Shown here: piece after piece, positions 41,972-55,652 of the stretch
Layout: each line of letters begins with the position of its first letter
Numbering within the stretch: the first letter of the stretch is position 1
NCBI GenBank assembly: GCA_965603825.1
Contig: CBFDEM010000037.1
Location: 310,001-374,000 of the forward strand
DNA: 64,000 nucleotides
Direction of reading: 5' to 3'
From: Blepharisma stoltei ATCC 30299
Taxonomy: Eukaryota; Protista; Ciliophora
Notes under the pieces: generated by a model
The model's database searches: none
Seen by the model: the letters and a program-made list of their open reading frames with translations, nothing else
Told to the model about the DNA's origin: nothing
Program-made: the position numbers and the translations under genes

Positions 41972-42122
41972 GTCTTATTAAATTGATTTTGCATTATTTA
42001 TATGTTTTATATTAAAATTGCAGATGATATTAAAACTGTATCCCCTAGAATTAAATTCTCTTCTACACAATCCTACCATTATATTCTTAGCGAATCTATA
42101 ATTCATAATAAGGAACACCACA

Positions 42123-44354
42123 ATGGCGAATGCAGTCAGAGAAGGTATGAGATCGATCAACGAAAATCTCGTCAAAAACCTATTCACCTATTTGGAGACA
42201 GGTGTTTTTGCCAACAAAACAAACGACGCTTATGTAAGAGCTTATGGGCTAGTTCTTGAGCTGGCAGACCAAGATGACAATGGGAAAGTGCTTTATGATG
42301 AGTATATCAAGACAATTAAAGAATATACTGTAAAAGTTGTGAAGACTGAGCTCTCGCACTTAAAAGGAGAACCCTTGCTCACCAAGCTAGCTTGAAGATG
42401 GGAAAATCATAAAATCCTGGTCTATTGGATGAGAAAAATCTTCATGTACCTTGACAGGTATCACGTAAAAAACACCCAAGCAGTTCCCCTTTTCCAAGCT
42501 GGGCTCAATATTTTCAAATCAGATGTCTTCGACGTCATTTCAGAACAAATCAGAATTGCACTTGTCTTACAAATCCACAGCGAAAGAGAAGGTATTGCCA
42601 TTGACCGCAATCGTGTCAGAGAATGCTTGGTCTGCTTTGCTCAGATGGGCCTGACGGACTCAGAAATTGTCAAAACTCACGATAAAGCTGACGATAGAGA
42701 TAGACTGCTGTGGAAAGGCAACCCAAAGCTTGAACTTTACGAAAGGATTTTTGAAAGCCCATTTTTGGAAGACACCAAACTTTACTATGCCTCAAAATCG
42801 GCAGGCTGGATGTCAAGTCTCTCATGTCCTGAATACTTAAGAGAAGCAAAAAAAGTGCTGGAAGAAGAAGAGGAGAGGGCTGACAGATATCTTGAGCCTA
42901 CAACAAAGCCGAAACTCCTAGGCATCATTGTGGAAGAAATAATTGTGAGAAACGCCCAAAGCTTGTCAGAAATGCCTGGAACGGGATGCGTGGATATGTT
43001 TCAGCATGATAAAAGGGATGAGCTGAAAATGATGTTCGCCATTTTCAAAAGGTCAGAAAACACGCTGCAGCATATTACGTCAAAAATGGGGCCTTATATA
43101 GAAAAAAGAGGATCTGCTATTGTTTCGGATCAGCAGCTACAACAAGACGCAATTGAATATACAAAAGCACTGCTGCAGTTCAAAAACGAAATCGATACAT
43201 TGGTAGAATATTCATTCGATAACCATTCACTGTTCCAAAGATGTAGAGATATGGCTTTTCAGAACTTTATGAACAAATGCGCCTTTTCTGCACCTTATAT
43301 TGCTTCCTACTGCGACAATGAAATGAGAAGAGGTCTTAAAGGAGTCTCTGAAGTAGAAACTGAGAGAAGACTTGACGCATTGATTAAGCTTTTTGTATGT
43401 CTTCACGATCGAGATGTGTTTATTAGGAACTATACGAGATATCTAGCTAAGAGGCTGCTAGATGGGACAAGTATAAGCAATGATGCTGAACAAACAATGA
43501 TAGCCAAGCTTAAGGTAGAATGCGGCAACAACATTGTGAGCAAGATTTCGAATATGTACCAGGATATTGCATTGTCTGAAACCGTTATGAATGAGTTCAA
43601 GACTCAGCGTCACAAAGGCCAGCCTGATGGCATTCAGCTTTCAGTACAAGTATTAAGAAGCGGCTGTTGGCCTGAACAATCATCTGAAGCTTGCACTTTG
43701 CCTCAAGAAGTCCAAGGCTGCACCAGAAAGTTCACTGAATTTTATATGAATAAGCACCAAGGACGTAACCTTACTTGGCTTCTTGGGTTTGGAAATCTTG
43801 AAATGGGTACTTTGTTCTCTAAAAAGAACTATACTTGTATCGTCAACCCTTACCAAGCAGCCATTCTTCTTATGTTCAACCACGGAAACGGATATACAGT
43901 CCAGCAGTTCAGAGAAGCAACAAGACTCAGCGATAACACCCTCAAAGCCCACTTAATTATGTTCTTCAACCCTAAGATGAAACTCCTGAATAAAGAAAGC
44001 AAAGGGAAAACCTTAGATGACGAAGACTTAATTACAATTAACGAAGACTTCCAGTCCCAAACTTTAAGAGTCAACTATATCCCGAAAAAAGTCAAGAAGA
44101 CCGAATCAAGCGCCAAAGAAGATGAAATAGCTATAACTGCAGAAAGAAAAAATATTCTGGACTCTGTTATCGTGAGAATTGCGAAGGCTAGAAGAGTAAT
44201 TAAGCATCAAGAATTAGTAACTGAAGTAATCAGGCAGGTGAACCACTTCAGACCTCAGCCTCAGATGATTAAGACTCAAATAGAAAGCTTAATTCAAAGA
44301 GAATTCTTGGCTAGGGATGAAAATGATAGGTCGATCTATAACTATATCCCATAA
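42123..44354 (+). CDS. Cullin (E3 ligase scaffold), conserved copy
   Basis: WENHK..W...IFMYLDR; DRDVF..Y...LAKRLL; MIAKLKVECG; neddylation region IVRIAKARR; IESLIQREFLARD; one TGA at 42393. Confidence 0.95.
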
Positions 44355-46737: not shown

Positions 46738-47727
46738 ATGGGCAACTGTGAATGCAGTCCTAAAGCTGCAAAATCTAAGCAAAGTTTGAATAGTTCACCG
46801 ATTTTAAACGAGCAGAGCGTTCATATCCCTCAAATGCATCCTAAAGTCCATGCGCTAGCAGAAAAAGTATTTAAAGAGCAAATGAGCTCTGTGGCAAATA
46901 TAGATCTAGCTGATAAAAGTTTAGGAGAGGAATGCGGAAAATACTTGGCCGCAATACTTCCCTATTATTCACATGCAAGTGAACTTAATTTGGATAATTG
47001 CCAACTGCTTGAAGGGTCATGCGAAGTTATTGCTACGTCTTTAATAGATATGATTAGCTTAAAAGAGTTGAATTTGAGTAGGAACAGAATTGGAGATAAG
47101 GCAGCTGATATACTGAGTTTAAGCTTGAGCAAACTTACAAAGCTGGAAAAACTTATGCTAGAAAATATTGGTATTGGTACAGAAAGTGTTATTTTAATTT
47201 CGACAAGTTTGCTAACACTGATCAATTTAAAAGAATTAAACTTGAGCCAAAATCGGCTTGGAAACCAAGGTGCAAGAGCATTGGCTAATACTTTTTCATA
47301 TATTCCGAAGCTAGAACTCCTCGATATTCATAATACAGAAATCGGAGCTAAAGGAGCAGCATTTATTGGATTTGAAATTTACAAGCTGACTAAGCTGAAA
47401 GTCCTAAATATAGGTGAAAATAAGCTGTTCTCTTCTGGAATTTCGGCTATTATCTCAAGCCTCCCCAAGTCTATCCAAATTCTAAATTTCGAACAGACTG
47501 GCTTGGATAGCCACTGTTTATCAGAAAGCTGTGAATATCTTTCAAGGCTTTCTTCTCTAACAGATCTTTATTTAGATAGAAACAACATAAGTAGCGAAGG
47601 ATCAGCCTCGATCATAAGAATCCTTTCATCACTGAACTTAAAATACCTTGGCCTTTTGGGCTGCGATGTCAGTCAGCAACGCCAAGAAATCACGCTTGCA
47701 AGCATGTCCACAGAAATTTACTTATAG
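46738..47727 (+). CDS. RI-like leucine-rich-repeat protein with N-terminal MGNCEC acylation motif
   Basis: ~28-residue LxxLNLSxNxIGxxGA repeats; Gly2 plus Cys4 and Cys6. Confidence 0.88.
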   Translation: MGNCECSPKAAKSKQSLNSSPILNEQSVHIPQMHPKVHALAEKVFKEQMSSVANIDLADKSLGEECGKYLAAILPYYSHASELNLDNCQLLEGSCEVIATSLIDMISLKELNLSRNRIGDKAADILSLSLSKLTKLEKLMLENIGIGTESVILISTSLLTLINLKELNLSQNRLGNQGARALANTFSYIPKLELLDIHNTEIGAKGAAFIGFEIYKLTKLKVLNIGENKLFSSGISAIISSLPKSIQILNFEQTGLDSHCLSESCEYLSRLSSLTDLYLDRNNISSEGSASIIRILSSLNLKYLGLLGCDVSQQRQEITLASMSTEIYL

Positions 47728-49217: not shown

Positions 49218-50423
49218 ATGTCAGAATTAATTTCAAAACTGATCAAAGAGCAGCAATCACTTACCAACGAATGCAAGCGCGGAATAGAAGCCAATAAACT
49301 TTCTTTATGGAGCTACAAAGCAGAGCTAGGCTCCCTTGAATCTCAATTCAAACGATGCAATCTCATCTTAGAAGAACAAGAAAAATATTATTCAGCTGTT
49401 GTTTCTGAAAGTCGAGCTGCTGCAAAAGAAGCCAGTCTAATAGCAGAATCGTTTAATAAATTCCAGCTTCGCTCCATTCTAGAAATCATAAACCCATGGC
49501 CACTTCTTCAAGATTTAAGCATTGCGATCTGTTTAATGATTGGCTATTCTACAGGTACCTGGTCGACTTTTCGAGTATTTTCTAATTAGAGAGTCATCAA
49601 AGACTGCGAGACTTTTCAAGAAACTCTGCAATCATTTGATCCTCAAAACCTTGAGCCTGAAAGCCTCGATTTTATATTGCAGATTCAGAAAAAACATAAC
49701 CTTTCTCTCATGATTCGTGATGGAAGAATTCCTGATGAAATTGTGGCACTTTCTACGTGAGTTATGAAGGCTTATACCTATACTGTTAAAGATATGGAAG
49801 CACAAGAAATCTGTGAAAAAATGCCAACTTTGGTTAAAGAACAGGCTGAAGTGTATTTGGATATGAAATCAATTAAAGAAGATATAGCAGAAACCGAGGC
49901 TCGGCTTACAAGGCTAATAAGCTGCATTGAATCAGCTGAGGCAAATATTTCACGACTCAAAGAAGTTGATGAAAACTCTCCTCAGGATATAGAAAATGCT
50001 AGTTCTGACTGTAAAAAAATTGATTCTATTGCCAGAAGTAGCATTAATCTTGATCAATTACTTACTAAAATTGTAGTAAATGACGGAGTTAATGCTTATT
50101 GGCAAGAAGAAGATGATAGCCAAAACCCAAGCTTGCTAGTGGAAAGCTTGTTTATTTCTCATAATTTGAGTCCTGATTTAAAAGAAGAGCTTAAATTAAT
50201 TGTAAATCCTACAGATGAAGATGAAGGAAACGTGGACTTAGAAAATGATGTTGTTGATAGAGCGTCACTAATATCAATGCAAGAAGTGACTGCTAGTAAA
50301 AATACTTTCACAGGCAAAAAAACTGATATCGATAACAAAAAGCCATCTAAGAAAAATAATAGAAAAATCAAAGAAGAAAAGATAAAAATACGAAATAAAA
50401 AGAAATGTTGCGGCTTTGTCTAG
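49218..50423 (+). CDS. Coiled-coil protein with dynein stalk/microtubule-binding-domain-like core and polybasic-CCGFV tail (~396 aa)
   Basis: Same-frame ORFs joined by intron 49575-49589 and TGA at 49758; see findings for the alignment. Confidence 0.7.
49575..49589 (+). other. 15-nt spliceosomal intron
   Basis: GTATTTTCTAATTAG with A10; removes an in-frame TAG. Confidence 0.88.
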
Positions 50424-51514: not shown

Positions 51515-53734
51515 CTATGGGACATAGTGATAAGCTGAAAGATCATTGATATCTCTTGCCAAGAATTCTCTTTCAATCAAGCTTTCAATTTGTGCTTTAA
51601 TCATGCTAAGCTGAGGTTTAAAACTCTTTACTTCTTCGAGGACTTCAGATACTAACTCCTGATGCTTCATAACTATTCTGGCTTTCGCAATCTTTACAAT
51701 AATAGCGTCCAAAATCTGCTTTCTTTCAGAAATAGCTATTATTACTTCTTCATTATGGCTTGGCTTGGAAGCTCTCACTGCTTTTTTAGGAATGTAAATA
51801 ATTCTAACCGTTGCAGCTGCAAAATTTTCATTAATTGTAATTAATTCTTCATCATTTAACGTCTTCCCTCTGCTTTCTTTATTAAATATTTTTGATTTTG
51901 GGCTGAAAAATTTTATGAAATTGGCTTTAAAGGTATTTTCACTTAATTTGGAGTTCTCTCTTAATTCTCGGACGCTATATGTATTTCCATTATTAAACAT
52001 AAGCAGTATGACTGCTTGATATGGGTTCACTATAAAATTGTAACTTTTATTCAAAAACAAGCTGCGGATCTCAACAGTTCCTAATCCAGTAGCCCAAGTA
52101 ATGCTACGTCCACTGTATTTATTCTTATAAAATAGAGAAAATTCTTTTGCTAGAGCTTGAATTTTATAAGGTAATAAGCAAGCCTCAGATGATATCCCAG
52201 GGCAACACCCTGATTTCAAGATCTGTGCAGAAAACTGAATTTCATGAAGGCCGTCTTGGTTATAGTTCTGATTAAACTCAGCTGTAATAACTTCAGATAG
52301 AGAAATATCTTGGTAAATACTGTAAATTTTATTCACAATTGCATAGCCACCCTCAATCTTCAGTTTTTCAATCAATATTTTTTCTGCGTCATTGCTTATG
52401 CTAGTCCTATCTAATAGCCGCTTTGCCAAAAGGCGAGCATAGAGATTAATAAATATATCTTTATCATATAGCCATACAAAAATCATAGCAATTTCAGATA
52501 ATCTTATATCAATTTCTCTATCAGAAAGTCCAAGAAGTCCTTTTTTCATCATATAGTCGCTATAATCGACAACATAAGGAGCTGAGCATGAGAATTTATT
52601 GATAAAGTTGCAAAATGCAGAAGAGCTGCTTTTCTGGAATGCAAAATGGTTGGAAAATAAATAATCAGTTAGTTTATCAGTTTCTGCTTCATATTTTAGT
52701 ATTGCTCTTGTGTACTCAATAGGATCTTGTTGGAGCTTTTCATCTGATATAATCTCTAACCCCTTTTTTTCAATATAAAGCTTAAATCCAGGAGTGATGG
52801 ATTGAAGAGCAGTTTCATAGTTTTTAAAAACCTCAAACATCATTTTCACTTCATCTCTTTTATCTTGATCAAACATTCTTATTTTCCCAGTTTCTAGTAT
52901 ATCTGCTAAACTCAAGGCAACTCTTTTTACAATCTCTTCAGCGATAATATTTAAAAGTTTATTTTGTAAATTCTCGTAACTTCTAATTCTTTCTGATTCT
53001 TCTTCGAATATTTTGATTGCTTCCTGGAAATTTTTAGGGATCAAAAGGCTTGACATTCATCCTATGGGCTTAGAAGTATAATAAAGCTTGACCCCTTGCA
53101 AATATGATTCTTCAAAAATTTCTTTGGAAAATTCGTAATTGGGGATCCCTTCTCATATAATTTTCTTTTGATTTTTCCTTTTAGTCAGACTTGCATCTCT
53201 TGCAGCAATTTCTGAAAGGCAGGATAAGCATTTTCTCATATAGCTAGCATTGCTGCCATTTCCTTCTCTTTCATATTGTATTTGCTCAATAAGGGCTGCA
53301 CGGATTTTACTTTTTGATATTAAATCAAATAGCTCAGTTTTAAATAGTTGTAATCCTAGCGGAACTATACGTGAAAGTCCATTATTTTTGACATGATACA
53401 AGTCAAGAATGCAAAAAATTTTTTGTAGCCAATAGACAAGAATTTTGTGCTTTTTTCATGATTTATGGAGATTAACTACTAAATTTCTTCCTTCTGAGCA
53501 AAGAAGTTTTGGCTTTGATGTTTTTTCGGTATAAGTCCTGGCAAGATTGGTATATTCCTCATACAAGAAATGTGAATTATCGTCTATTTCATGAGTCTTG
53601 TAAACAAGACCGTAAGCATTCATAAAAACATCGCATCCTAGATCTGCTGGATTTCCATTTTCAACTTGCTCGAATATTTTAGGAGCAAGGTCTTCTTTAA
53701 TGTAGGTTAAAGTTTCTCTGAGCTCATCGTTCAT
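51515..53734 (-). CDS. Cullin, divergent paralog of 42123-44354
   Basis: Three same-frame ORFs joined by TGAs; end-to-end similarity to the first cullin (LAKRLLDRTSISNDAE, NKESRGKTL, QIESLIEREFLARD). Confidence 0.9.
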
Positions 53735-53940
53735 TGAATAAAAATTACTAAAAATGTAGAAAGTTCATTAATTTCAAGAGCAAGCAGATTATATGCTTAT
53801 GCAATGTTATTAATTTTTTAATTCATATTATAAAGTAACAGAGTTTAAATAAATTATATAAAAATATAATTTAAATAAGCTCAAATTTAGCAATGAAATC
53901 TTTATTATAAATCGTCAATTTAATTTTTAAATGATTTTTA

Positions 53941-54002: not shown

Positions 54003-54344
54003 ATACAGAAATAGTTCTCACATTTCATAGTTATCAAATTTAAAATTGAGCGAATCAAAAGGTTTAAAATATAAAAGAAGTTTGAACTTTTGATAGAAAA
54101 TTATTAATAGGTATTTACAAATTATTTATAATTGGAACTGAATAAATTTGAAAAGCCTCTTAGGTATGATTCAAGTTCTTTGTTCCAATTTTAATAAAAA
54201 TTAAATGGAGTATGGTGCTTTGCTATATGACACTTTTGAGAGTCAATCAGAAAGCATCAGATATCATAAATTTGAAATGCGGATTAATTGAGCTTTTTAT
54301 CTTTTTTGGATAAATCCATATTGTAAAGGATAAATAAGATAAAT

Positions 54345-55652
54345 ATGGATGACTCCCGAGGAGTAGCTGAGAACATCGAGCAGTGAAAAATCAAAAGATT
54401 GATTCAAAATCTTGACAAGTGCCGAGGGCATGGAACTTCACTTATCTCCCTGATCATCCCACCTACCGAACAATTATCCCTAACAGGCCGTATGATAAAC
54501 GATGAGTGCGGCTCAGCGACATCAATCAAGTCCCGTGTAGTCCGCCAAGCAATCCTAAGCGCTTTAACCTCAATCCGAGAAAGACTAAAGCTTTACAATA
54601 ACAGAATGCCTAAAAATGGCCTTGTGATTTACTGTGGTGAAATCCTAAATGACAAAGACGTCATTGAGAAAAAGGTCACAATTGATATTGAACCATTCAG
54701 GCCGATTAACACAAAAATTTATATCTGCAACAACACATTTCACACCCAACCGCTAAAAGACCTTTTAGTTATGGAAGATAAATATGGATTTATCATTATA
54801 GATGGAAATGGTACTCTTTTTGGCACCTTACAGGGAAACGCCAAAGAGATCCTTAACCAATTTTCAGTTGATTTGCCAAAAAAGCACAGAAGAGGTGGGC
54901 AGTCTGCACTTCGTTTTTCAAGACTTCGAAAGGAATCAAGGCACAATTATTTGAGGAAAGTCTCAGAGCAAGCAGTTGTGCAATTTATTACAGGTGACAA
55001 GATAAATGTGACTGGGATAATTATTGCTGGAAGTGCTGAGTTTAAAAAGGAGCTAGCCCAGAGTGACATGTTTGACGAAAGGCTTCAATCAAAAGTGATA
55101 AAAATTGTGGACATCGCATATGGAGGACAAAATGGCTTCCAACAAGCAATTGAGCTATCAGCAGATACATTGAATAATGTGAAGTTTATAAGAGAAAAGG
55201 CTATTATCAGTCAATTTTTTGAAGAAATCGCCCAGGATACTAAGAAGTATTGCTATGGAATTGAAGATACAATGAGGGCACTTTTGATGGGATCATGCGA
55301 AAAAGTCATTCTCTATGAAAATTTAAGTGCCGTAAGGACTTTGCTAAGACATCCAGAATCAGGAAGAGAAGACATCGTGTATTGCAATCAAGGGAAGGAA
55401 GCAGAAATAAGTACAGTTGATGAAAAAGGAGAGAAGGTTGACATAGTCGAGCAAGGACCTTTAGCCGAATGGATTGTGGAAAATTATATGAAGTTCGGAT
55501 CTGAGCTTGAACTGGTCTCTGATAAAAGCCAAGAAGGTAGCCAATTTGCTAGAGGATTTAATGGGATTGGAGCGTTTTTAAGATATCAACAGGATGTAGC
55601 CCAGCTCGGAGAAAACGGAGATGAAGAGGATTGGGATGAAGATTTCATGTAA
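54345..55652 (+). CDS. eRF1: Eukaryotic peptide chain release factor 1 (435 aa)
   Basis: ATG 54345 NIEQ(W)KIKRLI; GTS loop; xIKS; YICNNTF; LPKKHRRGGQSALRF; DKSQEGSQFARGFNGIG. Confidence 0.96.

Follow-up and report, generated by a model that had tools for sequence, protein, structure and literature searches.

A motor-less dynein stalk with a lipid-anchor-type tail in Blepharisma stoltei

The protein described here is a real and previously undescribed variant of the dynein stalk. It is intact, under selection and motor-less, it has a conserved tail of the lipid-anchor type, and it belongs to one of two sister subfamilies. Its gene lies in a window of 64,000 nucleotides from Blepharisma stoltei, which is the whole stretch of DNA that was analysed. 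We consider it likely that the protein is a lipid-anchored stalk without a motor, and plausible that it functions as a membrane-to-microtubule tether. In the literature searched, which includes few subscription papers, nothing describes a dynein stalk protein that stands alone.

The gene consists of two exons on the + strand (49218-50423), with an ATG at 49218 and a TAG stop at 50421-50423. Its features are:

49218..49574, + strand: exon 1, 119 codons (residues 1-119), encoding the CC1 helix, helices H1 and H2 of the microtubule-binding domain (MTBD) and the start of H3; Met1 is conserved among orthologs
49575..49589, + strand: spliceosomal intron of 15 nt, phase 0, GT..AG; position and length are common to six orthologous loci taken from public assemblies
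49590..50423, + strand: exon 2, residues 120-396, followed by the TAG stop
49758..49760, + strand: TGA encoding Trp176, the CC2 tryptophan conserved in dynein MTBDs (from a codon comparison in seven loci and the alignment)

Introns in B. stoltei are mostly of 15-16 bp, and UGA is read as Trp (PMC9942806). The last three nucleotides of the intron form an in-frame TAG, and its retention would lead to a stop after 123 aa. Two other orthologs have no intron at that codon; the orthologs that carry the 15-nt intron are probably heterotrichs. The codon for Trp176 is TGA in three and TGG in four of the seven loci compared, and Trp31 and Trp290, which are TGG in the B. stoltei gene, are TGA in the closest ortholog. 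The first-pass annotation, made from the DNA letters alone, had proposed both the splice and the reading of TGA as Trp. Both are borne out by the shared intron, by the TGA/TGG alternation, and by a database protein (CAG9325108.1 / A0AAU9JHE5, an unnamed 396-aa protein of B. stoltei, here P0001), which is identical over exon 1 and carries the same splice and the same Trp. The two parts probably also belong to one transcript, as had been supposed: the P0001 record spans both exons, and one ortholog is recorded in two transcript forms, one spliced (P0016) and one intron-retained (P0022). The remark that the gene is invisible in the standard ORF track was overstated, since it shows up there in the form of two ORFs (123 aa and 219 aa). 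Full-length analyses were run on P0001, while exon 1 and exon 2 were searched separately; the genome searched comprises 41.46 Mb in 64 contigs.

Compared with its closest, Blepharisma-like ortholog the protein is 69% identical, with dN 0.21 and saturated synonymous sites (pS 0.80). The low dN together with the saturation of synonymous sites shows that purifying selection acts over the whole length of the gene. As a side observation, an in-frame intron with a terminal TAG occurs in seven loci, where retention would cut the protein short within helix H3; in two orthologs the intron is stop-free, and its retention would add five residues.

The AlphaFold2 model (pLDDT about 90 or more over its three main parts) consists of a helix (residues 2-77), a six-helix head (78-170) and a second helix (171-244). 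Confidence is already low past residue 275, and disorder is predicted past about residue 325. The parts of the protein are:

49221..49448, + strand: CC1, residues 2-77, predicted single helix (pLDDT 90-97), aligning with the dynein stalk
49278..49337, + strand: conserved stalk-base patch, residues 21-40, family-specific, with invariant E24, K27, L28, L30 and W31
49449..49742, + strand: head with MTBD fold, residues 78-170, six helices without the axonemal flap; H1 contacts lost (S86, L88), H3 Arg119 retained
49725..49739, + strand: H6-CC2 junction, R165-I-P-D-E169; Arg retained at the mouse R3382 position, dynein S-x-A replaced by P-[DE]-E
49743..49964, + strand: CC2, residues 171-244, helix in the AlphaFold2 model, aligning with the dynein stalk
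49965..50207, + strand: extra helices after the stalk and acidic region, residues 245-325 (6 K/R, 16 D/E)
50208..50318, + strand: linker, residues 326-362, acidic, weakly conserved, predicted disordered
50319..50420, + strand: basic tail, residues 363-396 (14 K/R), ending Cys392-Cys393-Gly-Phe-Val, with the CC codons at 50406-50411; candidate for S-acylation with or without prenylation

The model resembles the dynein stalk and MTBD (PF12777; PDB 5AYH, 8I3J, 3ERR, 6RZB) in its antiparallel CC1 and CC2 of similar length and its six-helix head, with Z of 13-16 against these. A model of the domain (pLDDT 93.6) was also obtained. The head model matches dynein MTBDs with TM 0.67-0.75 and Z 12-13.6, and the full model matches two whole-stalk crystal structures with Z 16.2-16.4 over 248-249 aligned residues. 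Across these comparisons (Z 12-16.4), the model agrees with the likeness to dynein suggested by the first-pass annotation. A Z of 13 can be reached by chance for helical bundles, although here the sequence profiles point the same way, as do top ranks filled by dyneins alone. Because the full model aligns over such a length with the whole-stalk crystals, residues 1-251 are predicted to form nearly the whole dynein stalk and MTBD, and not the tip alone. The modelled CC1 would be about 11 nm long (76 residues x 0.15 nm). Mean identity is 49% in residues 21-40, compared with 28-35% in the head and 16% in the linker. Because residues 21-40 are the best conserved, the stalk base is suggested to be a candidate site for partner binding or dimerization.

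The sequence relationship to dynein is detectable only with a family profile or through the structure. A profile of the family (13 sequences, residues 55-215), run with hmmsearch against the PDB, finds dynein stalk tips with a best E of 1.4e-8, and its top 38 matches are all dynein-length or dynein-named chains (38/38). HHalign of the family against 21 dynein stalks from the B. stoltei genome gives 97.6% (97.5% for the head alone, 0.4% for a reversed control). P0001 and the single exons, by contrast, have no match to Pfam MT (PF12777); the best ortholog reaches 18.3 bits (E 0.0013), below the Pfam gathering cut-off of 24 bits, and the locus is not among the matches of a PF12777 search of the B. 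stoltei genome. Pfam and PDB searches with single exons gave nothing significant, the best dynein match having E 0.12. The dynein stalk-head pattern noticed at first reading is thus upheld, and by the profile comparison proposed for it, though only with the family profile and not with P0001 or either exon. Some candidates were rejected: the haemagglutinin matches of single exons (E 0.08 or worse) are chance coiled-coil similarity, P0013 (a Hydra repeat protein) was discarded as a spurious family member, and the 'MTBD-like' motif of TTLL11 is no link to dynein, the term concerning TTLL6/7.

As a homolog of the MTBD the protein is divergent, not canonical. It shares with dynein MTBDs conserved Pro and Gly, the H3 and CC2 tryptophans, and basic residues in H3 and H6. 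It differs in lacking the H1 Glu and Arg/Lys, in the P-[DE]-E replacement, in a one-residue insertion after H3, in its added acidic linker and basic di-Cys tail, and in scoring below the Pfam cut-off. It is not a dynein heavy chain, as the chain has no six-AAA+ ring and no dynein linker or tail. The absence of an AAA ring had been noted before and holds: the 396-aa protein contains no AAA module, its start and stop are conserved, and the 64-kb window contains no dynein heavy-chain reading frame.

The protein ends in KKKCCGFV-TAG. A basic run and Cys-Cys are present in all 12 full-length family members, though the linker before them is only 16% identical. The cysteine at -4 is present in eight of the 12 orthologs, two of which end in Arg, and absent from -4 in the other four, where the pair is shifted further from the C-terminus by one residue (three members) or five (one member). 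B. stoltei and three other orthologs end in CGFV, and a further two in CGFA or CCFA; these six proteins have a CaaX box in the sense of Cys at -4 plus an acceptable aaX. An exact match to KKCCGFx-stop is found at a single place in the B. stoltei genome, and the other matches, to a looser tail pattern, were set aside as lying inside frames of 13-27 codons. The genome also has three PF00432 (prenyltransferase beta-type) genes, one of which matches farnesyltransferase beta at E 7e-82; the other two are presumably GGTase-I and Rab GGTase, judging by their motifs. A strict CaaX box does not tolerate shifts in spacing, while S-acylation of a Cys pair beside basic and hydrophobic residues does. Because the CaaX spacing varies among orthologs while the pair is invariant, S-acylation of the pair appears to fit better than prenylation alone, with prenylation optional and still possible for the B. 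stoltei protein. In having a basic run and then CC near the C-terminus, the tail is like Ykt6-type CCaaX and Ras-type CaaX anchors with palmitoylation, but unlike their strict box the CC of the family ends at -4, -5 or -9. We infer from these patterns that the tail is lipidated. Of the prenylation-type tail first proposed, what stands is the invariant basic run and Cys-Cys, suggestive of a lipid anchor; what does not is the strict spacing, which is lost in 4/12 and also in the sister subfamily (subfamily B), with its CC at -8/-7.

The interface of the MTBD with the microtubule is formed by helices H1, H3 and H6 (PMC6629372). The H1 glutamate (Dictyostelium E3390, mouse E3304) pairs with alpha-tubulin R403 and is the allosteric switch of motor dyneins, governing stalk sliding and the activation of the ATPase (PMC4298687). 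The partners of alpha-tubulin E416 are Dictyostelium R3469 (mouse R3382) and K3472, where H6 ends (PMC4298687; PMC12706001). These positions were counted in 12 sequences of the family proper (subfamily A) and in the 21 dyneins of the B. stoltei genome. Of the two H1 contacts, the acidic one occurs in 2/12 of the family compared with 19/21 dyneins, and is Ser86 in the B. stoltei protein; the Arg/Lys two residues further on is present in 1/12 compared with 20/21, and is Leu88. The basic residue of H3 (Arg119) is retained in nine of the 12, and that of H6 (Arg165) in ten. After H6, where the dyneins have S/N-x-A (S/N in 21/21, Ala in 19/21), the family has P-[DE]-E, with Glu in 12/12, adjoining the position that faces alpha-tubulin E416. 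The net charge of the head is -8 to +1, compared with mostly 0 to +7 in dyneins. The loss of the H1 basic residue and the two new acids at the H6-CC2 junction argue against a canonical high-affinity pose. The acids may, however, merely cap the N-terminus of the CC2 helix, and a copy without a motor might be expected to lose the switch glutamate. We put direct microtubule binding by the head at close to, but a little short of, an even chance. The first-pass annotation had spoken of a motor-less, lipid-anchored microtubule-binding module. Its stand-alone stalk/MTBD fold and Cys/basic tail are found, but the head has lost the dynein H1 contacts and is neutral to acidic, and the best conservation lies at the stalk base.

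The B. stoltei genome contains at least three other motor-less stalk/MTBD genes, two of which are subfamily B paralogs:

L031:1303-2403 (contig C1) and L033, about 1319-2367 (contig C54): subfamily B paralogs, from the family-profile search, with acidic linker and Cys-rich tail
L021:1492-2166 (contig C46), - strand: P0036, a single-exon, 225-aa, stand-alone CC1-MTBD-CC2 protein (Pfam MT E 5e-16)

The subfamily B proteins have the same stand-alone CC1-MTBD-CC2 arrangement, acidic linker and Cys-rich tail as the protein studied, with a different tail spacing (CC or CY, then basic, aromatic and Cys residues) and more of the tubulin-contact residues. The H1 acid is kept in 7/7, the H3 Lys in 6/7 and two H6 basics in 7/7 each; the H1 basic residue is not kept. 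The subfamily B paralogs would be stronger candidates than the gene studied for a direct contact with microtubules. Subfamilies A and B are grouped in the tree at 100/98 with all dyneins outside; both sit on long branches, so that attraction is possible, yet the one-residue insertion after H3 is common to both. No sequence affinity of the family to any one dynein was seen. P0036 is also a stand-alone CC1-MTBD-CC2, but it has no tail, keeps the H1 Glu and Arg, and is much nearer to the dyneins, branching apart from A and B. Its UniRef name is 'Dynein heavy chain coiled coil stalk domain', and it has 70% identical transcript homologs, one of them from MMETSP1395. Among the dyneins themselves, L022 (C41:611987-612997, - strand; Pfam E 3e-13) is a very divergent heavy-chain stalk, with the longest end branch of the dyneins in the tree, and is the only one of the 21 to lack the H1 basic residue.

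A profile search of a set of 5.8 billion sequences found no member in Tetrahymena, Paramecium or named Stentor; it returned only five proteins and missed known members, so that absence is not implied and the taxonomic range should be read as a minimum. Haptophyte MT-like proteins of 324 aa, which form an Atlas cluster, are a lead for wider occurrence.

The fold search also gave three chains that do not resemble dynein heavy chains, namely 9ya2_L from the Toxoplasma intraconoidal microtubule, 9fqr_Xl from the bovine sperm axoneme and 9e5c_2e from the T. brucei axoneme. The first of these (162 modelled residues, numbering up to 1457) matches the model with Z 10.7 over 124 residues, rmsd 2.9 and 12% identity. 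It is probably ICMAP2, judging from the residue range and size, although the order of accessions in the paper (9YA2 being the other microtubule) conflicts with the PDB title. ICMAP2 is a non-motor protein of 1,678 aa, with a resolved globular domain amounting to 10% of it, which links two microtubules and sits as a dimer between protofilaments on the outside of the microtubule (PMC12819142, PMC10774369). If 9ya2_L is ICMAP2, it is like the protein studied in being a non-motor alveolate protein with a globular domain matching the MTBD, in its case on the microtubule exterior; it is unlike it in its size, its dimerization and its crosslinking of two microtubules, and there is no sign of orthology. 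A dynein fold is not mentioned in the ICMAP2 papers (PMC12819142, PMC10774369), nor is an MTBD likeness of the Toxoplasma and bovine chains in the Toxoplasma and bovine papers examined. The bovine chain is possibly the radial-spoke protein EFCAB5, going by its residue range only. If these identities are right, the MTBD fold would have found further uses, on microtubules as well as away from them; either reading of the head is compatible with this.

We propose that, in an ancestor of the heterotrichs, a gene-sized copy of a heavy-chain stalk (CC1-MTBD-CC2) split off as a gene of its own and gained a C-terminal membrane anchor. Cys392 and Cys393 would be S-acylated, Cys393 perhaps also being prenylated in species that keep the CaaX spacing, and the lipidated cysteines and the basic run would pin the C-terminus to a membrane (plasma, ciliary or alveolar) on its cytoplasmic side. 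Beyond a floppy acidic linker there would be a rigid hairpin, about 11 nm long, and its head would contact a microtubule close by, either with low strength or in a pose that is not canonical, via the retained basic residues of H3 and H6. Loss of the H1 glutamate switch, which couples binding to stalk sliding, would be tolerable because there is no ATPase to couple; it would be dispensable and hence lost. The protein would serve passively, as a low-affinity spacer or tether from the membrane to cortical or ciliary microtubules, probably in arrays or jointly with a partner bound to the conserved base of the stalk. To this explanation as a whole, an anchored passive strut with weak microtubule contact, we assign a probability of roughly 0.45. 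More tentatively, and with the odds somewhat against it, subfamilies A and B may form a heterotrich family of lipid-anchored struts, possibly working together, which fix the distance of the membrane from cortical or ciliary microtubules; together with ICMAP2 this would make the MTBD a reusable passive module for binding microtubules outside motors.

The anchored stalk might instead keep the fold as a pseudo-MTBD, binding a non-tubulin protein or pairing with a subfamily B protein that supplies the microtubule contact. This is a serious possibility, though we lean against it. Both H1 contacts are systematically lost, the acidic motif after H6 is invariant, the head is neutral to acidic, and conservation peaks at the stalk base; moreover, MTBDs are able to bind other proteins (LC1 complex 6l4p), and the fold is matched by the bovine sperm chain, for which EFCAB5 is suggested by residue range. 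A pseudo-MTBD is less easily reconciled with the H3 and H6 basic residues in most members and with the retained stalk length, and no candidate partner was identified. A strictly CaaX-prenylated tether binding with the high affinity of dynein is unlikely. The CGFV, CGFA and CCFA endings and the prenyltransferase genes agree with it, but Cys is missing from -4 in 4/12 (in one through five extra residues), two more members end in Arg, the CC of subfamily B lies elsewhere, and the canonical H1 contacts are gone.

The whole stalk length and the conserved patch at its base are also what might be expected if the stalk were supplied in trans to a stalk-less, catalytically dead heavy chain, as a split dynein, or were a decoy competing with dyneins for sites or regulators. 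A membrane anchor would be superfluous in both cases, and the family has no affinity to any particular dynein, making this very improbable. Finally, the weak similarity of single exons could suggest a dynein heavy-chain gene that has decayed to a fragment, or a mis-annotated part of such a gene. We regard this as negligible: start, intron and C-terminus are conserved in about a dozen genomes and transcriptomes, and selection is purifying. The gene is not a broken heavy chain, because there is neither an AAA module nor a heavy-chain frame, and Met1 and the C-terminus are conserved.

Accounts of the dynein MTBD treat it almost exclusively as a motor's foot under the control of ATP, and an anchored, motor-less stalk would, if true, be a new use of the module. 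To our knowledge, few molecular names are attached to the membrane-microtubule links of the heterotrich cortex, and the anchored strut proposed here, if true, would provide a named candidate in large heterotrichs (Blepharisma, Stentor). The A/B pair offers a natural experiment for telling MTBD residues that act in binding from those that act in allosteric switching. Should tubulin binding by the head be absent, the protein would count as a pseudo-MTBD, which is still of interest, though less so.

Several neighbouring genes in the window were also noted. On either side of the gene studied lies a cullin-like gene of 750 codons (42102-44354, + strand, and 51515-53767, - strand); the two are in opposite orientation, about 7 kb apart, and were assigned by sequence appearance. 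A leucine-rich-repeat protein (46738-47727, + strand) has the N-terminus MGNCEC, a likely start for N-myristoylation and palmitoylation. At 54327-55652 (+ strand) lies an eRF1 gene with an altered NIKS region (SATSIKS, YICNNTF), in an organism in which UGA is Trp.
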